Shown one piece after another: positions 11,676 to 47,420 of a stretch of DNA of 64,000 bases; the stretch's first letter is position 1, and the number at the start of each line of letters is the position of its first letter. A model generated the notes under the pieces. It was not told the origin of the DNA, searched no databases, and saw nothing but the letters and a program-made list of their open reading frames with translations. Source of the stretch: Zygnema circumcarinatum SAG 698-1b (Eukaryota > Plantae > Zygnematophyceae); the NCBI GenBank assembly GCA_037447605.1, contig CM074814.1:620001-684000 (forward strand). Reading direction: 5' to 3'. The position numbers were made by a program, and so were the translations under genes.

Positions 11676-12442
11676 CAGTAGGACCCCGTCATATTTTCGC
11701 CGTAGATTTGGCAAATATCGGGCGAAAATATTGTATTTGACAAATATAAGGTCCGTGTTACCAATAGGCGAGCGGAATTATGTTAGAGTTCATGTATGTC
11801 CGTACGTATCGTATCGTAGTGTTTTTATAGCATATCGTACCTCATCGCATCGTATCGTTTAAATTTGAGCCCGTAACGGCTACTACAGCTCGTACGACTA
11901 GTACGGATAGTACCGTATCGGGACTTGTCATATCGTATCGACGTCAAGAAGAAGTGGAGAAGAGCGAGCGCCTCTTACGGCGGCACGTGCGGGGAGTACA
12001 GGTGAGTTTTGCGTAAGCCCGTGACGGCTAGTACAGCTAGTACGGGTAGTACGGTTAGTACGGATCGCACGGATAGTACGAATAGTACTAGCTGTACTAG
12101 CCGTCACGGGCTTAACGCAAAACTTCACCTAATCTCCCCGCACGTGCCGCCGCAAGAGGCGCTCACTCTTCTCCCCTTGTTCTTGGCTTCGATACGATAC
12201 GATACGATACGATACGATACGACACGTCCCGATACGATACTATCCGTACTAGCCGTACGAGCTGTAGTAGCCGATGCTAAACGATACAGTACGACACGGT
12301 ACGATACGATATGTACGGACATACATGAACTCTAACATAATTCCGCTCGCCTATTGGTAACACGGACCTTATATTTGCCAAAAACAATATTTTCGCCCGA
12401 TTTTTGCCAAATGTAGGTGGAAAATATGATGGGGTCCTACTG
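11676..12442. mobile_element. Non-autonomous pogo/Tc1-like foldback MITE (767 bp, nearly whole element palindromic)
   Basis: Termini CAGTAGGACCCC / GGGGTCCTACTG. Right flank is TA, left flank is TG (possibly a mutated TA TSD). About 11676-12043 is the imperfect reverse complement of about 12085-12442, with a loop of about 40 nt. Confidence 0.75.
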
Positions 12443-13304
12443 TATGTGTACGGTCAAGTTGATGTGTACGGTCAAGTCGATATCTGACGGTATTTGTCGA
12501 TAATATGTACGGTCGTAATATATTTGTAACGCATATTCCAATACGTGGGTGGATAATATCGAGAATTTGAATATGTAGTAACAATTAGGGCTTTTCAAAT
12601 GTGATTATATCTGTTTTGTCGTCACTACTGGCGCAGGATCTGCAGTGGTACAATTCCGTTCCCGCAAAAAACGTCGGTATATCCATTTTGTCATTAGGGG
12701 GAGTCAGACCTTGACCATCGCCCGCGGAATTGCAAGATTTCGACCGCGGAAAGGTATTGATTTCGATTTCCGAATTCGGATCGGAAACCACGGCTCCCCC
12801 CGAACCTGTCTGTCACGTCCGTACGGCGGAATAGGTTACAAAAATGCCCCCAAATTTCAGAATTCCGCGCTCCGAAACGGGGGGCCTCCCGAGGCCCCCC
12901 GTTTCGAAATTCCAGCTTTCCGCCGATGAGGAATCGTGCCCCGCCTTGTCGCCATGCGCGTCACGCACGTGCGAGCGTCTCTCTGCCGCCGCCCGGACGC
13001 CGCGACCCGCCGCCGCGCAGTGCTGGCAGTGCTGGCACAGGTTTAGGGTTTCGCTTCCTCCAGCACCAGCGTCCGCTTTCCGGCAACTGTGAGCACCACG
13101 GGAGAGCGGTGAGCGAAGACGCCAAGGCGACGAGGTACTCCCTCTCTATTCCCCTCTGTTGCTGTCTCCCTCGTCTCTCCCTCTCTGTTCCCCCTTTCTC
13201 TCTCTCTTGCTATCTCCCTCTATCACTCTCGCCCTGTTATCTCTCCCACATTCTCCCCGCCTGTGCCACTCTGCCCTGCCTCCCTCGGCCTGGCCCATGC
13301 CTCC

Positions 13305-14110
13305 CTCGTCTCCCTTGCTGCTGCTTTTCTCGCTGCTTCATTGTCTGCTGCTGCTGATGCTTTTTCTGCTGCTGCCCCTGCTGCTGCACCAGCTGCTTTT
13401 AGTGCTCCTTCTTTCTCTGCTTCTGCTGCTGCTGCTGCTGTTTCTTTTTCAGCTGGTTTTGCTATTGTTGTGCTGTTGCTGCTGCTGCTGTTGTTGCTCC
13501 TGCCGTCTTTTCTGCTGCTGCTGCTGCTTTATTTGCTGCTGCTGCTGCCACTGCTGGTGCTCCTGCTTTTTTTGCTGCTTCTTCTCTGCTACTGCTGCTG
13601 CTTTTGCTTCTTTTTCTGCTACTGCTCTTTTTACTGCTTCTTTTTCTGTTGCATTTTTTGCTGTTTCTTTTCCTGTTGCTGTTGCTATTGTTGTTCTGCT
13701 GCTGCTGCTGCTGCTGATTTTTTTACTGCTTCTTTTTCTGTTGCTTTTGTTGTTGCTTCATTCTCTGCTGCTGTTGCTATTGTTGTTCTGCTGCTGCTGC
13801 TGCTGCTGATTTTTTTACTGCTTTTTCTGTTGCTTTTGTTGTTGCTTCATTCTCTGCTGCTGCTGCTATTGTTGTTCTGTTGCTGCTAGTGCTGCTGGTG
13901 CTTTTTTTACTGCTTTTTTTTTCTGAAGTTTTTTTTGCTGCTTCTTTTTCTGCTGTTGTTGTGTTGTTGTGTTGTTGTTGCTGTGTTGCTGTTGCTGCTG
14001 CTGCTGCTATTGCTGTGCTGCTGGTGCTGGTGCTGCTGTTGTCCTTTCTGCTGCTGCTTTTTCTGCTACTGTTGCAGCATTCATTTTCTTTTTTGCTACT
14101 GCATTCTTCT
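13305..14110 (+). repeat. Degenerate (CTG/TTG)n trinucleotide tract, left arm of the TIR element
   Basis: Visible gctgctgct/gttgtt runs. The mirror (CAG)n tract lies at about 15640-15980. Confidence 0.9.
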
Positions 14111-14265
14111 TCCGCATTCCGCATTGCCCTGTCCTTGTGCTTCCCGTTCCTTATGCTTGTGTTGTGTGTATGATTGCATATAATTCCTCCCCTTCCTTGT
14201 GCTTCCCGTTCCTTGTGCTTGTGTTGTGTGTATGATTGCATATAATTCCTCCCCCTCCCCATTAA

Positions 14266-14336
14266 GTCGAAGTGGCGGATTGGTTACGCAACTGTTGCAA
14301 AACAGGAATAAAGGGGTTCAAATCCCCTCTTCGACC
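14266..14336 (+). tRNA. tRNA-Cys(GCA)-like sequence, probably a pseudo-tRNA (6-nt anticodon loop)
   Basis: Acceptor stem GTCGAAG/CTTCGAC 7/7 paired; D arm GCG/CGC; anticodon arm ACTGT-TGCAAA-ACAGG; T arm AGGGG-TTCAAAT-CCCCT; A-box TGGCGGATTGG and B-box GGTTCAAATCC present. Confidence 0.65.
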
Positions 14337-15496
14337 TGCACTGTTCATTCATTCTTCCATTTGTATTCATTTATAGTTTTTGTGTTTGTGCTTCATGTCT
14401 TATATTTGTTGTTATTTTTCCTAGTTGTTTTTATTGCTTTTTGCCTTTTCCTTCAAAACTTTGAATACGTTTTACATCATATTTTCTTTTGAGCATATAT
14501 AGGTAGTTTGCTAACAAAATTATGCCGGCACACTCAGGAAAAACTGTCTTCTTTGGTTTTTGGAAACCTTGGTGGTATAAGCAACCATATCAAGTGCGGC
14601 AATGGGCTGTATTTGATGCCATCAGTACAGTTATAGAATCCCTTGTAACTGCGTGTGCTCAAAATCCAAAACGTCCGGACTTAGGAGAAACAAGCTGATA
14701 AAGGTGCAATTGATTCAACAACAATACAAAAAATATCATTAGAATGATCGACGTGTGGGCAAAGGAGGGACAAAGTGGGCGGGGGTGGGAAGACGAGGAT
14801 CAACAAGAGAGACTGGAGAGGGTTGAGATCCACTAAAGAGGAGAGCGAGAGTGAGTCGGGGATAAGGCATAAGAGGGAGACAACAACAAGAAGACTGTAA
14901 GGGGCAAAGAACACAAGATGCTAAGATGTCACATACTAAGATGGGGAAGGAGACACACGGGGTGGAACAGGAAGGGAAGTGACAGAAAAAAGAGAGGGCA
15001 AGACACAGCAAGGTAAGCGAAAGAGAGATAAGAAGGGAGGGGACAGGAAAGGGGGGGGAAGATGGAAGAACAAGGCAGGGAAAAACAGAGAATGGAGCGT
15101 GAGAGGGAGAGAGAGTGGGAGGGGGAGGGAGCAAGTGAGCACACGGAGACAAACATGAGGAGAGATGGGCAAAAGAAAGGGTCGCAGGTGGCAAACTAGA
15201 CGGACGTCTATATGAATAATCTTAACAGACAGGAAGACAGTCTGTCAGCAGACCAGCCGTTCAAATGGAGTTTCCAAACACCAAGCTGCGAAGAGAGTGA
15301 AAAACAAAAAACAAACGCACCAAGGCCAGCATAAAGAGAGAGGAGGAAGCGGGTGAGGGATGGGGGGAATGCACAAACAACAGAAGTGAGAATGGGAGAG
15401 AGAGGGCACAAAGAGGGGGGAGGGGCAGAGAAAAAGCAAAAGCACAAACACAAAAATTATAAATGAATAAAAATAAAAGAATGAATAAATCGTACA

Positions 15497-15567
15497 AGTC
15501 GAAGAGGGGATTTGAACCCCTTTATTACTGTTTTGCAACAGTTGCGTAACCAATCCGCCACTTCGAC
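15497..15567 (-). tRNA. tRNA-Cys(GCA)-like sequence, second inverted copy (6-nt anticodon loop, U73)
   Basis: Same cloverleaf on the minus strand; anticodon stem ACTGT/ACAGT fully paired; discriminator U; T-rich tract downstream. Confidence 0.65.
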
Positions 15568-16779
15568 ATAATGGGGAGGGGGAGGAATAACATGCAATCA
15601 TACACAACACAAGCATAGGCAAAGGAACAGGCAGCAGAAGAAGAAGAAGAAGAGGCAGCAGCAACAGCAGAAAAAGCAAGAGCAAAAAAAAGCAGCAGCA
15701 TAGAAAGCAGCAGCANNNNNNNNNNCAGCAGCAGCAGGAGCTGTAGCAGCAGCAGCAGGATAAGAAGCGGTTGGAGCTGCAGCAGTAGCAGCAGAAACAG
15801 CAGCAACAGCAGTAGCAGCGGCAGCAGCACAACACAAAAACAATAGCAGAAACAGCAGATGAAGAAGAAGAAGAGGCAGCAGCAGCAGCAAAAAAACCAA
15901 AAGAAAAAAAGCGCCAGCTTAAAAAGCAGGAGCAACATCAACAACAGCAGCATAAAAAGCAGCAGCAGCAGCAGTAGCAAAAAGAGCACCAATGGAGACA
16001 AGGGGGGCATGAGCAAAGGCGAGGGAGGCAGGGGCAGGTGCAAGAGCACAGGAGGCAGGGGCAAGGGAAAGGGAGGCAGGGGGAAGGGCAGAGAAGGCAG
16101 GTGCAGAGGCAAGGGCAAGGGAGGCAGGTGCAAGGGCACGGGAGGCAGGGGCAAGGGTAAGGGAGGCAGGGGCAAGGGCAAGGACTCACCGCTGCTCAAG
16201 TCCGCCGTCGTCCCTAAAAACCGATCGCGCTTTTGCCGTGGTCGACGGCACACCGCTCACCGTTCACCGTTCACTGGGGTGAGGCGAGAGGACGCTCTGC
16301 TCACTCCGCTGCAAGGATGGCTCGGGCGATGGCGAGGGAGGAGCCCTATACCCTAAACCCGAGCTGATCTGAGCTCGCAGCGAGCGAGCAGGTGGGCAGG
16401 CGGCGGGCGCGAGGCGCCGCGGCGGGACGCCGCTCGCGCGGTGGTGACGCGCATGGCGACAAAACGGAGGGCGGCGGGCGGCGGGCGGCGGAGGGAGCGC
16501 GTGGGGCCGAAAAGGGGGGAGTCAAACCTGGGCCGGAGATACGGAGGCAAAATAATTGCTCTCTGGAATTCGTGACGCCCGAGCCTGTCGAACGTCCACT
16601 TTTCGCGGAATTGGGCTGCCGTACAACGCGGAATTAGGGTCGGGGGTTTTCTGAATTGATTTGGCGCTGGTCTAAGTCTGACTCCCCCTATTATAAACAT
16701 TGTCGCTTTTACGCGACTACACTGTACATAAAAATCTGCAGTTCAACACTGAACTGTAAAACTTGCACAGTTCGGACCA

Positions 16780-17092
16780 TTGGATCGGCAACCATTGGAC
16801 AACCATTGGATGGCAATGGTTGGACGCTACTGGTTGGCAACCAGTCGACTGGTTGCCAACAAGTGGCATCCACTGGTTCCAAACCAGGCAACCAGTCGAA
16901 TGGTTGTTTCGGTCGGCAACCACTGGTTGGCAACCAGTCGAATGGTTGTTTCGATCCGGCGGCACTGGTTGGCAACCAGTCGAATGGTTGCCAACCAGTG
17001 GATCCACAGGTTGGCAACCAATCGAATGGTTATATCCATTAAATCAAAAGGTTGGCAACCATTAAATCACTAGTTGTCAACGGTTGGCAACC
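16780..17092. repeat. Short satellite built on the palindromic core CTGGTTGGCAACCAG
   Basis: About 8-10 copies of (ct)ggttg(g/c)caacc(ag), often followed by tcgaatggttg, with variable spacing. Confidence 0.8.
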
Positions 17093-18749
17093 CACCAAAA
17101 AACACATACGACCCATTTTTGAGCCCCTACATCTCCCTACACGTTTGACTTACAGTAAACTATTAGTTTCCTCTTTTTGAAGTACTCACGGAACCCTAAG
17201 CCTAGCCTGAACCCTAAGCCTCGCCTGAACCCTAAATCTGGACTCCTGCTCCTCCTCGCGATTCTGACTGCTCTCACAAAGCGCGCACTCATGCGCTCTA
17301 CGGCGACGGAACAAAACAAAACAAAATAAATTCAGCAGAGCATGTCCATCCACCCAAGAGAAGAAAATGAGCACAGAAAACACACACATCGCAGTATTCG
17401 CATTTTCAGATGATCACATACAGTTGAAAGAAATTCATATCAGAAATTTCAGAGTGTGCAGTTTTGCTGAAAATAAAAAGACTGCCAAAAGTAGTGGAAG
17501 TTTCAAAAATAAAATAACGAAGCACTTCAAAATTATGAAGGAACGAATTTACGATTTTTTATATGAAATGAAGTTACAGCTTCAAGACTGAGCCTTCAAC
17601 TCCAGCCCTTAGACTCTACCACACTTTTAAACTCCTAAATGAATACCCCCAACCTTCCTTACCCACCTTCCCTCTCTCTCTCTCTATCTTCTTTTTCTCA
17701 CTCCATCCTTCTCTCTCTCATTCCCTCCCTCCTTCCCTATCTCCCTCCCTCCCTCCTCCAATATTTGCTTGCTTGTTTGCTTGCTTGTTTGCCCGCCTTC
17801 TTGCTTGCGTGTCTCCCTCCCTCTTTCCTTTCCTCCTACCTCCCTGCCTCCGTCCATCACATTTTTCAATTGTCATCATTCACATAATCCGGATAGTTTC
17901 CTCCTACCTCCTTGCCTCCTTCATGAAGACATGTTGTACGCATATGGATTTTCGATTCATTGAAGGGAATTTGGGAGGAATTGAATGGAATTTGGGAGAA
18001 GAGTTTGTCCAACTATTTTCAATCTCTTTTAGATGACAAGGTGGTTGCAAGGATCTTGGACGACCACCTCTACGTTGGTTGCAGGTATTGACTTTTATTA
18101 TGCAGCATGTTCCTTTTGTTTCTATTGTTTTTTTTTTATGTTGTTTTTCTATCGCTTTTTTTCTTTGTGACAAAAATTCCCAACTCTAATTTGAACACAT
18201 AATTTTAGCTTACTCTAACATTACCTTTGCCATTATCTCAACTTTGAACCCTATTCTCAACTTTTTGTATGACAAACCTTAGACTCATCACAAAAGTGAC
18301 CTTAGATTGTAAATGTTGTTGTTGTAAATCTTATATTTATATTAGTACCTTTTTTTACAACTTCAAATGTCGTCACTTAATTGAGTAAGAATTCAAATCT
18401 TTCATTCTTTGAGTTCTTAAATGCTTACAATTTTGCTACGTCGTTTTAGCTAACACTTCGTATTATAGGGATACACTATGCAATTATCATAGATTCGTAT
18501 TTTGATCTCATCATTGGATTGGGGATGCAGACAACTCTTCTCGTATGAAAGCATTGAATTTGATTGGCGATGTTGAAATGGACCAATGGGTTCTCATAAA
18601 GGAAACTGACGTGGGCTTTTACTACAAAGGCTCTTTAGTGAAGAATAGACAACTTTGTTTTATAAAACTGAAGACAAATGACAACGTGTAGACTTTCAAC
18701 CATAATTGAACTTTTATAATCCCGTGAAAGTTGCCTAAGTGATATTAAA

Positions 18750-19868: not shown

Positions 19869-22538
19869 TAGGGTTGGGGGCACGGGGCACGGGCATGCCC
19901 GGGGGGGGGGCATGCCCCCCATTTTTGACCGTCCGTGCCCGGGGCACGCCTCCAAAAAATTTCCCCATATATTTCGTGCCCCCCCGTGCCCCCTGTCACG
20001 TGACGCTTACCTCGTACGACCGGGCCCGGGCCGGTGACGATTGAAGACAGCGTTCAGTTCCGCATCGCAACTATCTCTTTCTAACAAAAAAGAAAAGAGA
20101 GAAAAAGCACTCAGTAAAATGATTTGGCATTGATCTCACTCAGTAACTATGTGTACAGTAATAGTAACACGCAAAAATCTGTTCGATTTTGTTGTCTTCA
20201 CGACCTGCTTAACACACCCTTGTAGATGTGGTACCTCCTTGTTCTTCGATCTGTTCTTTCATTCTTTTGCTTGGGGCTGTTTATGCTGTCAGTGAGATCT
20301 TGTGCTTCCGCAATTGTGGCGTCTCCGAGCCCAAGGCGTGGAGGGATGTCCGAGGCATCCTCTTCTCGGGCAGGAGGTACCACATCTACAACCCTCCTGC
20401 CTCTTCCTCCCTCATCCCTCCCTCGTGTCTCCTTGCCTCCTTGCCTCCAGCCTCCTCCCTCCCTCTCTTACCTCTCGCATGCCTCCTGCCTCCTGCACTT
20501 TGCTCCTTGCCTCCTCCCTCCTCCCTTTTGCCATGGCTGCTACAACAAAGGATGGAGATTAGCTGCCACGTCTGGAAGCAAAAGGAAGGTAGGAAGGGCA
20601 CAGACTCTTCTTCCTCTTCTTCCTCCTCCTCCCGTGATGTCTACTACTCGCCCGTTACCAGAAGAAAGTCGACCAACCTTTATGCAGTCTTTGCGTAGTG
20701 AACCTCTCGAATGGGTGCAACCGGAGTCTGCTTTGTCAAATGCGTGGGATGGGTTCCTCCGCTCTCAAAAGAAGAAAGAGGGGTCAACTAATCGTTACGC
20801 AGCTAAGTGCAGTCGATGTGATGTGTCTATGGACGGGAAACCAGACCGCCTTGAAGCTCATGTACGAAAGTGTGAAAGCATGACTGCAGAAGACTGTGAA
20901 GCTTACAGATTGATGAGAAAAGCCAATCCAAATGGCCAAATGAAGGACGTTAGGGCACTTAGGTTAGCCCGTTCACGTGTACTTGGGAATCAAAGTCAAC
21001 TCAAAATCCTACCAAAACGCAGCCGCTCTGAAGTCACGGATGTAAATTCAGGTGGATCACATCATTTGACTGACTACTACCCACGACCGATGAGTAAAGA
21101 CACATTGGATGGTCTCCATATGCGGCTTCTCAATAGCTGCATCAGCTCTGGTTTACCCTTTCGAGTGGTATAAAACTCGCATTTCAGAGATTTTCTTGAA
21201 CAGTTAAACCCTGCATACACATTACCTTCTCGGAGCACACTGACAAACACCATTCTTCCTAGGGCCTATGGTGATACTTGGTCAAAGACAATAGAGACGA
21301 TATCCCAGATTACAAATGTTACTTTAGCATTGGATGGTTGGACCGATGTCTCTGGCAATCAATTTTTTGGATTTATGGCTTTAACAGGGGAAGGTAGGGG
21401 TCTTATCCTAAGTATCGAGCACCTGACAAATAGGCCAACATCGGACAATCTTTTGACCCTTTTATCAAAAGTCATAGCTAAAGTCGGACTATCAGTTTCA
21501 AAGTCAGTTCGTGCTATTGTCACAGATAATCCTACTGTTATGACATGTCTGAGGGGGAGATTTTTGGAAGAGAATCCTGGTGTAGTCTCTATCAATTGCA
21601 TTCTTCACACTTTTAATAGCTTGACCAGGGATATAGCAAGTTTGTCTTCAGTCAAGGAAGTGTTCAAGGCCAACCAGACGATAGTTAATTTCTTCAGCAG
21701 GTCTCACTTTTGGAGTTCAACTCTGAAGAAATGGATGAAATTGGCAAACATCAAGAGGTGGCTTTCAACCTTTTGTGAGGCACGTTGGTATTCTATGGTA
21801 CTCGTATGTGAGAGTGTCCAAGAGTTCTCGGAAGGATTCAAATATTGCTTGGAGGTGGCAGGCAAAGACAACAATCCTAGTGTGGATATGCGAATCAAGA
21901 ACATTATTGGAGATACAGTGCACTTCGCAAGGAACGAGCAGTTGCTCCAAGTTTTACGACCAATAGGTGATGCAATTGCCCGTCTAGAGAGATATGACGC
22001 AACAGTGGACNNNNNNNNNNCTGACTAGATACATCACTTTAGAGGAGGTACAAGTGGGGGATTTGACGGCTGAAGGGGAGTTACCTGCAGAATCGTTTAC
22101 CGATGATCTGGATGAAACCATTATGGAGGAGGACGTTAGCACTCTACAAGAGCAACATCTCCAACCATTCATTGATTTATCTGTTTATTTTGATTTTGAT
22201 GCTTACTATGCAGATGAAAGTGTTCCAGCATCGGCGGTAGCTATTAGTCCTAGTCGAGAGCAGTGGGATATGGAAGCATTTTTAGAGCATTAGATTACTT
22301 GTGAAGACCGATTTCTCTTGGTTTTTTATGTTGTTTTGCTTTCAGTATTTCAAAGACCTTAAAGATTTTGGGTTTACAGCAATAACAATAACATCAGTAG
22401 CAGCAACAATAACAACTAAGAGGTGCCACATATCATAGTATTGGTGGTGCTTTTGTTAGTAATGGGAGACTCTTGGGAGGGTGTTGAAAATAGAAGACCG
22501 ATTTCCACATTCCACATTTCCGATTTCCATTTTCAATT

Positions 22539-46030: not shown

Positions 46031-47420
46031 CTACAACTTTGTGACCGGTCGTAAAGGCGCAGCGCCTGACCCACTCCCGAGATGCTTGAAGGCCGTCGCC
46101 ACAACTTTGTCCCCATGGCCGGCAAACCCCGTCCCTCCCTTCTCCAAATGAACCAAGTCTTTAGACTTACAAGGCGTAGAACATGATACACACGCATTGT
46201 CTACAACCACAAATTTCTCCGCACATTTCTTGCATACAACGTGCCCGCATGTCCTCAAAGCCGTGAGAGCCATGACATTAGTGAGAGTGGCCGAGCAGGA
46301 GCCACACATGAAGCGATCTCCACCTGCTGTGTCTACTTCGTCCGTCTCTCTTCCTGGCAGCTCTGTGAAGTGAATTTCAAAGAGGTCTTTCATCCTCAGC
46401 TTCTCCTTCCCTTCAGGACACACTGTGTGTGTATCTGGAGAATCCAACTTTTCCACTGCTTCGGGCGTCGCGGATGGAAGCCAGTAGGCTCTCATTGTTC
46501 GCAGAGCTTCTTCTTCGTATGCTGTTGTCTTCACGGAATTGGCTCCATGAAAACCTGAACCTGAGCTATTGCTTCTGCCCAACTGCCGCATATGGTCGTT
46601 TGCCATAGGGACTGCGCTGCTGTTTTGTCTGTCAAAGGCTTCTAACTCTCGCTCTCTTTCTGCAGCCTGCTGCTCCTGCTGGTCCTCCAGGGTTTGCTTT
46701 TCCTGTTGATGGTAGAGGGCTACCTTCCTGAACGAAGCGAGAAGGCACAATTTCAGATAAACGCTTTATGCTTTAAATTGCATGCATTTACAACTATAAC
46801 CATTGTATTTCTGGATATGTCTACTGCAGTTTTCCCAGAGTAATCCAGGCCCGATCCTATGCAAATTAGGATAAGCTATATTTGGCTCAACTTGAACTCA
46901 ATCAATAGCAATGAAAAGCTGAACAAGAGAAGAGTCTGCAAATAAATATTGAAAGACCAAGTGCACAATTGTCTACTTGGTCCTGGTGAGACAGAACAGA
47001 AACAGACTGCTTCCCTGCATCTCTTTCCCGTCGAAATTCAGCAACTGAGTTTGCAAAAATTGGGGAACAAAACGATTACAAAGTAGCAAAGCAAAGCGAA
47101 CGAGGGAGGGAGAGAGATGGAAGGGAGGAGTGAGAGACCTAAGCCTAGTAATATTGGTGAAAAGAGAAAAGCACATTGCACCTCTGAATGTCTTTCTTCT
47201 GAGCGAGAAGGCATGAGTAGATGCAGTCGCGGCAGAAAAGGTGGCCCTTCTTGCAGGAAAGCGGCTCCAGCACAGACTTAAGGCAGAGCCCGCACGCATC
47301 AAAAGGCTTCAAAGAGTCCTTGCCGAGCCGCTCCCGCTGCGTGCCAAACCCTAACTTGCGCTTCTCCTCATACGTGAAGTGCGCGAGATCGTTGTTGTTC
47401 TTCGAATGGCGCTGCGGCAT
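46031..47420 (-). CDS. NOSIP: NOSIP / CSU1-like RING/U-box E3 ligase
   Basis: Exons 47420-47182 and 46727-46031: MPQRHSKNNNDLAHFTYEEKRKLGFGTQRERLGKDSLKPFDACGLCL..GHLFCRDCI; YWLPSATP; CGHVVCKKC; GGTGF. Confidence 0.92.

Follow-up and report, generated by a model that had tools for sequence, protein, structure and literature searches.

A probable non-autonomous foldback-type nuclear transposon of a streptophyte alga with tRNA-Cys-like modules in its arms

Two tRNA-Cys-like sequences point towards each other from the arms of an approximately 4-kb element in Zygnema circumcarinatum SAG 698-1b (positions 12697-16688 of the 64-kb stretch of DNA analysed here, the window), which raises the question of whether they are genes, working parts of the element or passengers. 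The element is non-coding, with a TIR at each end and TA on both flanks. With a probability of roughly 0.6, it is a non-autonomous class II (TIR) transposon of the foldback type that resides in the nuclear genome of this streptophyte alga and carries a tRNA relic as cargo. The tRNA-Cys-like copies would most likely be inherited cargo rather than a pair of functional genes or a novel RNA system, because one base of the anticodon arm has been lost.

The left TIR (12697..12722, + strand), consisting of GGGGGAGTCAGAC and an extension, and the right TIR (16663..16688, - strand) match at 13 of 13 bp and, over 26 bp, at 23 positions. In the 64-kb window, two exact copies of GGGGGAGTCAGAC are found, namely at 12697 (+) and at 16676-16688 (-). 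Comparison of the flanking DNA outside both ends revealed no homology, which gives the inverted repeat a sharp edge. The flanks read CATTA up to the left end and TATTA from the right end, yielding TA on either side (12695..12696, a candidate TSD, and 16689..16690). In this one copy, ATT with a 14-bp TIR fits the flanks as well as TA does; the TIR would then start from A12696, preceded by ATT at 12693-12695, and would include T16689, followed by ATT at 16690-16692 as the duplication. A sequence-only reading had described the locus as a bounded, TA-flanked TIR element. Its bounds are corroborated by the sharp inverted-repeat edge, the candidate 2-bp duplication and a subterminal motif; TA is indeed present on both sides, but as the target it is not certain, the ATT reading being equally compatible.

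The subterminal motif is the 9-mer CGCGGAATT, of which the window contains four exact copies, none of them more than 175 bp away from an element end, while about 0.5 copies would be expected for a random 9-mer in the whole 64-kb window. Two of them are located in the left subterminal region (12723..12906), at 12723 (+) and 12861 (-), which also contains a 16-bp perfect palindrome at 12873-12906, and two in the right terminal 174-bp unit (16515..16688), at 16604 and 16627. This right unit is bracketed by a 20-nt inverted repeat (80%), in which the right TIR pairs with a TIR-like copy, GGGGGAGTCAAAC, located farther inside. The CGCGGAATT repeats are candidate transposase-binding sites. Other copies of the element within the 64-kb window were found neither by a TIR search, nor by a search with the tRNA T-arm, nor by blastn of six segments against the masked window.

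Between the ends, the order of landmarks, which is TIR, motif, GC block, telomere-like box, CT tract, CTG tract and tRNA module, is mirrored in the two arms and colinear across an assembly gap. The left arm is about 1.7 kb long and the right arm, as assembled across the gap, about 1.25 kb; the asymmetric core between them (14394..15439) comprises 1046 bp and is first AT-rich, then GA-rich. The left GC-rich block (12931..12989) is homologous to 16399..16465 (-) in the right arm, which also matches an extension of the left block (78.6% over 70 nt), and a 19-nt stretch of the left block, TTGTCGCCATGCGCGTCAC, is identical in the right arm. The telomere-like box GGTTTAGGGTTT (13040..13051, +), read from the sequence and aligned, is mirrored by ACCCTAAACCC at 16350-16360, and the left CT-rich tract (13150..13310, +) by a GA-rich tract (16000..16183, -) built of tandem units of 21/48/69 bp. 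Degenerate CTG/TTG repeats follow in the left arm (13311..14070, +), where 13564-13991 comprises 4.7 repeats of a 92-bp higher-order unit, and degenerate CAG/GAA repeats in the right arm (15619..15995, -). A tandem duplication of leader sequence (14127..14258, +; 62 bp x 2.1, 95%) precedes the left tRNA-like unit. The claim that the arms mirror each other thus holds for the landmark order, but not for the outer arms as a continuous homology, much of 12757-12930 being only 33-44% identical, which is taken as near chance. Clear homology between the arms is restricted to the inverted repeat, the GC block, the low-complexity tracts and a 172-nt tRNA module (91%).

In the right arm, the degenerate CAG tract is interrupted by the gap (N10, 15716-15725), which CAG-type repeats adjoin on either side. 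Sequence may be missing there, because the left repeat tract measures about 760 bp and the right one, at about 370 bp plus the gap, half of that, and the two halves could be joined from different copies. The reading frame is immaterial at this point, since only low-complexity artefact ORFs cross the N10. The ORFs of the arms are CTG/CAG-repeat artefacts, and neither a Pfam search of the tested core ORFs nor an RNA-family scan of the core gave a match. The sole transposase-like ORF in the 64-kb window, of the hAT type (DUF659), lies outside the element. Among further ORFs compared with protein records, one of 527 amino acids had no entry, and a CSU1/NOSIP-like one matched Spirogloea (62%) and Mesotaenium (58%) best among named organisms.

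Each arm carries a module of about 180 nt in which a 71-nt sequence of tRNA-Cys(GCA) shape stands between a leader and a T-rich trailer. The left unit (14266..14336, +) scores 46.4 bits and the right unit (15497..15567, -) 52.0 bits against the Rfam tRNA model RF00005, whose threshold is 29 bits, and both are aligned over the full model. They are convergent, 1.16 kb apart, and both are recovered by ARAGORN, a check that had been proposed before, under the label "tRNA-???" with anticodon gcaa. A permissive Rfam scan of 12400-17000 detected only these two units and no third cloverleaf. As had been stated from the sequence, the units point inward and contain Pol III A and B boxes, each box agreeing with its consensus at 10 of 11 positions in either unit and being correctly spaced; the first T-run downstream is T5 at +41 on the left and T4 at +19 on the right. 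The count of only two differences in spite of the divergence of the arms is equally correct: 69 of the 71 positions are identical, the exceptions being G/T at position 41 and C/T at the last base.

The designation of the units as genes could not be upheld. Both anticodon loops read UUGCAAA with the anticodon GCA (Cys), yet in the Rfam alignment both units show a deletion at model position 31, that is, nucleotide 31 of the anticodon stem is missing, and neither copy possesses a full cloverleaf with a 5-bp anticodon stem and a 7-nt loop. Only the right copy carries the U73 discriminator; in the left copy, C73 takes its place, and there is an A27/G43 mismatch in addition. Since base 31 is absent from both, the units are not canonical decoders. 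In thermodynamic folding, the minimum-energy structure of the 71-mers is not a cloverleaf, a result to which no weight is given; such an outcome is common among tRNAs. The suggestion of Pol III-driven convergent dsRNA is likewise disfavoured, because transcription from either unit would be terminated by the T-runs 19-41 nt downstream, far short of the 1.16 kb between the units.

The homology of the two modules covers leader, tRNA and trailer. The left leader (14215..14265, +) is identical to the right leader (15568..15618, -) at 45 of 51 positions, and the left trailer (14337..14393, +) to the right trailer (15440..15496, -) at 49 of 57. Together with the cloverleaves, they span the inverted repeat 14222-14393/15440-15611 of 172 nt, beyond which identity drops to 33% at 14394. 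The tRNA body, with 97% identity, is more conserved than its own trailer (86%); if the body had changed at the rate of the trailer, 69 identities in 71 positions would have a binomial P of about 1e-4, and at that of the leader one of 0.02. This hints at constraint on the tRNA body, which might then not be a pure relic.

It may be asked whether the module is a working part of the element, which would recruit TFIIIC/Pol III, either as a boundary against silencing or for the production of short tRNA-like RNAs, or would serve as an RNase P/Z processing signal in arm transcripts. The properly spaced boxes with T-run terminators nearby downstream, the telomere-like box and CT-rich tract located upstream in each arm and oriented inward, and the likeness of the cloverleaves beside chance-level identity in much of the arms are consistent with such a role. 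However, there are only two sequences to compare, these show no compensatory changes and, in one of their two differences, the loss of a pair (A27/G43), and recent duplication or gene conversion would account for the identity equally well, so that a working module is considered unlikely, if worth keeping in mind. The bolder version, namely that the module is a selected, non-decoding tRNA mimic within a DNA-transposon family, recruiting TFIIIC/Pol III or tRNA-processing enzymes and kept by selection rather than by recent copying, is regarded as improbable; such a mimic could shield the element from silencing or direct the processing of its transcripts.

A different objection is that the locus is not one transposon at all but a local inverted duplication or an assembly artefact in which two different repeat copies were joined at the N gap, with only the 174-bp unit at 16515-16688 being mobile and the left "TIR" representing a solo end. 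The position of the gap within a repeat tract, the inverted ends that the terminal 174 bp possess on their own, the lack of homology in most of the outer arms and the fact that a 2-bp flank match arises by chance in 1 of 16 cases would all agree with this. On the other hand, TA is lacking at the inner boundary of the 174-bp unit, the mirrored landmarks run colinearly across the gap, and the subterminal motif is present at both ends, which makes this explanation rather improbable, too.

SINEs begin at the 5' end of the tRNA, move by retroposition, produce duplications of variable length and end in a 3' tail. Like tRNA-derived SINEs, the present units are tRNA-shaped sequences with Pol III boxes inside a mobile element; unlike them, they lie 1.1-1.6 kb inside a TIR element and have a conserved upstream leader. 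That a tRNA-derived SINE was inserted twice by chance, in opposite orientation, into an older element is highly improbable in spite of the Pol III boxes and T-rich tails of the units, for a SINE would be expected to begin with tRNA position 1 and the homology of the units sets in some 50 nt or more before it, there is neither a flanking direct repeat nor an A-rich or simple-repeat tail, the units occupy mirrored positions relative to all other landmarks, and no further copy of the unit occurs elsewhere in the 64 kb. The comparison of the arms rather supports the view that the tRNA-Cys(GCA)-like module is integral to each of them, because the cloverleaf is preceded by about 50 nt or more, and followed by 57 nt, of homologous sequence and flanking duplications are missing.

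As to its affiliation, the element displays the foldback architecture of long inverted arms with tandem sub-repeats around a short unique centre, with arm homology being patchy. The target duplication of the Drosophila foldback elements FB and Galileo is 7-9 bp, whereas the flank duplication here would be 2 or 3 bp. For FB and Galileo, the latter of the P superfamily, long arms of tandem sub-repeats, short conserved tips and a small or non-coding centre are described, as found here, together with structural variability between copies (PMC3573991, PMC3688188). The present element differs in having no transposase by which it could be assigned to P or any other superfamily, and FB and Galileo are not known to carry tRNA-like modules in their arms.

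The TA that is possible at the flanks, the short TIRs and the absence of coding capacity are reminiscent of non-autonomous elements derived from Tc1/mariner, such as Stowaway-like MITEs and Pack-type mariner elements. However, there is no transposase inside the element, its 4 kb with long repetitive arms are far larger than a MITE, and the TA reading is insecure. Stowaway elements start with CTCCCTCC, which the tip GGGGGAGTC does not match. With PIF/Harbinger-Tourist elements, e.g., mPing, which starts with GGCCAGTCAC, the element shares a G/C-rich tip followed by AGTCA, a left flank of TTA and a possible 3-bp duplication if ATT is assumed. Yet the right flank beside CCCCC is TAT and not TTA or TAA, the only 3-mer matching on both sides is ATT, which is not the usual TWA target, and neither a partner transposase nor a Myb-like gene was seen.

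A physical link between a DNA transposon and tRNA-type sequence is also found in Dada, which inserts into tRNA or snRNA genes with duplications of 6-7 bp, has no TIRs and encodes its own transposase (PMC3706591). Here, in contrast, TIRs are present and the cloverleaves are intact internal cargo instead of flanking gene halves, ARAGORN reporting two internal units only. Pack-MULEs are likewise non-autonomous TIR elements with host-derived non-transposase DNA (PMC8277862); instead of protein-coding gene fragments, the present element carries two copies of a tRNA-type unit in inverted orientation. A limited literature search yielded no described DNA-transposon family with tRNA-like cassettes in its arms.

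Searches for a donor or relatives of the module were largely empty. Exact-pattern scans of metagenome contigs with the 24-mer of the anticodon arm and the 25-mer of the T-arm/acceptor, a word-based protein search with the ORF that passes through the tRNA module, and a search of bacterial and archaeal genomes for the D-arm plus TTGCAAA as a donor signature gave 0 matches each; blastn against phages and plasmids for a donor tRNA returned marginal partial matches only. The sole match of a full HMMER search, a 3130-amino acid bacterial repeat surface protein (P0121), is spurious, its 16 identical repeats each scoring 26 bits and its locus containing no tRNA. TTGCAAA plus T-arm matched twice in bacterial and archaeal genomes, and neither match is a tRNA-Cys, one being the end of a tmRNA gene and the other a locus without a tRNA gene according to ARAGORN. 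No donor tRNA emerged, and at the sensitivity of these searches a bacterial-type origin of the module finds no support.

If the element is a foldback-type transposon with tRNA-relic cargo, its history may be envisaged as follows. A tRNA-Cys-type gene would have lost nucleotide 31 of the anticodon stem before being copied, and the module would descend from that gene and now move as cargo of the element. The likeness of the two copies would be due to duplication or homogenisation between the arms at a later time than the rest of the arms, to which some constraint on the module may add. The TIR and the subterminal motifs would serve as recognition sites for a transposase encoded at another locus, which would excise the element and insert it at TA (or ATT). 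The tRNA-like units could still bind TFIIIC and yield short Pol III transcripts, but should not decode.

The general picture of transposons or tRNAs would remain unaltered unless selection turns out to act on the tRNA-like unit. Provided that the above reading is right, the element would be a clear case in which a tRNA-derived sequence is multiplied by a DNA transposon rather than by a retroposon. It would inflate the counts of tRNA-like sequences in an alga closely related to land plants, so that it should then be masked in tRNA annotation, and it would spread potential TFIIIC/Pol III sites over the genome, which could matter for chromatin boundaries.

The element at 12697-16688 is best read, with a probability of about 0.6, as a non-autonomous, foldback-type transposon bounded by terminal inverted repeats (TIRs), each arm of which would carry a tRNA-Cys-derived, non-decoding module as cargo. 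The TIRs, as claimed in the sequence-only reading, are borne out: GGGGGAGTCAGAC has only two exact copies in the 64-kb window, at 12697 (+) and at 16676-16688 (-), and the terminal inverted match comprises 23 of 26 bases. Comparison of the 2 kb beyond each end revealed no shared homology; thus, the inverted structure breaks off sharply at the TIR. The flanks read ...CATTA/GGGGG on the left and CCCCC/TATTA... on the right. While the TA described earlier is indeed present on both sides, the target-site duplication is ambiguous: the flanks are equally compatible with TA and a 13-bp TIR or with ATT and a TIR of 14 bp (A-GGGGG...CCCCC-T). A 20-nt inverted repeat (80%) encloses the 174 bp at the right end, its partners being the right TIR and an internal TIR-like copy at 16515; the left end contains a perfect palindrome of 16 bp (12873-12906). 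The subterminal motif CGCGGAATT occurs four times in the window, at 12723 (+), 12861 (-), 16604 (+), and 16627 (+), always within 175 bp of an element end, against a chance expectation for a random 9-mer of about 0.5 copies in the whole window. This distribution matches the pattern of subterminal transposase-binding motifs and constitutes the strongest within-window evidence for a genuine TIR transposon.

The predicted pair of convergent tRNA-Cys-like units was detected by both ARAGORN and the Rfam tRNA model (threshold, 29 bits), which matched both units end to end. The left unit, 14266-14336 (+), scored 46.4 bits and the right unit, 15497-15567 (-), 52.0 bits; a permissive Rfam scan yielded no third cloverleaf. 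The units point inward and differ, as previously counted, at two of 71 positions. In the Rfam alignment, the base at position 31 is deleted in both, which is why ARAGORN leaves the isotype undetermined and gives the anticodon as "gcaa". The anticodon loop is UUGCAAA and the anticodon, therefore, GCA (Cys). The Cys discriminator U73 is present in the right unit; the left unit carries C73 and an A27/G43 mismatch. With nucleotide 31 lost, the anticodon stem either keeps 4 bp, leaving A39 unpaired, or has 5 bp and closes a loop of 6 nt. Normal decoding is not expected from an anticodon arm shortened in this way. Being common to both copies, the deletion would have arisen before the module was duplicated between the arms. 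The Pol III promoter elements noted before are retained, the A box TGGCGGATTGG and the B box GGTTCAAATCC each matching the consensus at 10 of 11 positions. The suggested Pol III-driven convergent dsRNA is disfavoured, since 1.16 kb separates the two units and the first T4-5 run follows 41 nt after the left one and 19 nt after the right one, so that transcripts would stop well short of overlap.

The arms mirror each other in the order of their landmarks, including a telomere-like box (13040-13051 and 16350-16360), and the spacing between them is 1046 nt, in agreement with the core of about 1 kb proposed initially. Their homology, however, is patchy. Besides the TIR (23/26), arm-versus-arm alignment gives 33-44%, taken as near chance, for 12757-12930; about 69% for a GC block at 12931-12989, which includes an identical 19-nt stretch and reaches 78.6% in its best local alignment; and 45/51 for the leader, 69/71 for the cloverleaf, 49/57 for the trailer, and 33% past 14394. 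The CT/GA and CTG/CAG tracts are alike merely as low-complexity sequence, and the units are enclosed by an inverted repeat of 172 nt (91%; 14222-14393 and 15440-15611). That the cloverleaf is better conserved than its own trailer (binomial P of about 1e-4 if the trailer's rate is assumed, 0.02 with that of the leader) might mean that the module has a function, either recruiting TFIIIC/Pol III or taking part in RNA processing. We consider this, the main alternative reading, unlikely, as the comparison involves two sequences with zero compensatory changes, and recent copying would look alike.

An assembly join of two copies, or a plain inverted duplication, is improbable, although an N10 gap (15716-15725) interrupts the right arm within a tract of degenerate CAG/GAA repeats. 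This tract measures about 370 bp plus the gap versus about 760 bp in the left arm, so some sequence may be missing there. CAG-type repeats of unchanged polarity flank the gap, arm-to-arm repeat pairings stay colinear over it, and it lies clear of both units and both termini. Only low-complexity poly-Cys/Leu/Ala artefact ORFs span it; hence, the reading frame is of no concern.

The homology between the units extends from at least about 50 nt upstream of tRNA position 1 to 57 nt downstream, both occupy mirrored positions relative to all other landmarks, and no direct repeats were found flanking them; a SINE inserted twice, the case named as refuting at the outset, is accordingly very improbable. 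These observations, together with a tandem duplication in the left arm that involves only the leader (62 bp x 2.1, 95%), fit a tRNA-like module that is an integral part of the arms.

Core ORFs gave no match in a Pfam search and arm ORFs are repeat artefacts, by which the element would be non-autonomous. The sole transposase-like ORF in the window, a hAT-type DUF659 segment (21174-22025), is unconnected to a 2-3-bp duplication. DUF659 is typical of hAT-family transposases. The segment belongs to 20226-22025 (+), where a 315-aa ATG ORF without Pfam match immediately precedes a 284-aa open frame bearing DUF659 (E 3.8e-19), probably a hAT-like transposon or domesticated copy that is unconnected to the tRNA-bearing element. 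The element lies in repeat-rich intergenic DNA. Minisatellites are found just upstream (9/18/27-bp units, 12024-12097; (CGATA)10, 12190-12240). Directly downstream, at 16760-17100, short palindromic sequences GGCAACCAGTCGAATGGTTG... form an array (3.5 repeats of a 42-bp period at 16887-17031) whose proneness to hairpins yields weak chance matches to miRNA models. An 18-bp tandem repeat GAACCCTAAGCCTAGCCT x 2.5 (17191-17235) shares the telomere-like AACCCTAA box with both element arms. Farther away, at 46034-46765 (-), an Rtf2/RING domain is encoded in a long, exon-like ORF, the relatives of which are named CSU1 or nitric-oxide-synthase-interacting protein (NOSIP). Its best named matches come from Spirogloea (62%) and Mesotaenium (58%), with Chara and land plants ranking lower, which puts the host among the streptophyte algae close to the Zygnematophyceae.

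The element works like foldback or long-TIR elements, among them FB and Galileo (PMC3573991, PMC3688188), and like Pack-type elements, the cargo of which is host DNA. Tc1/mariner membership is possible via TA, the TWA of PIF/Harbinger is lacking, and the features of SINEs and of Dada elements (PMC3706591) exclude it from both; these comparisons do not assign it to any superfamily. In a limited literature search, no family whose arms bear tRNA-like cassettes was found; the 64-kb window contains no further copies, and metagenome pattern scans gave no relatives (0 matches). Exact-match scans of bacterial and archaeal genomes found no tRNA-Cys with the D-arm or T-arm of the units, which at this sensitivity lends a bacterial donor no support, and blastn against phages and plasmids gave marginal partial matches only. 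A protein-space word search with the ORF through the tRNA module found no match. The sole full-HMMER match of this ORF is spurious: a bacterial 3130-aa surface-type protein (L003 10001-19393, ENA contig_5206) with 16 identical 115-aa repeats (SpaA_2/CLIPPER-like), where the E of 1e-23 is misleading because weak matches were summed over the repeats. This repeat-protein match calls for caution whenever translated non-coding DNA is used as a query.
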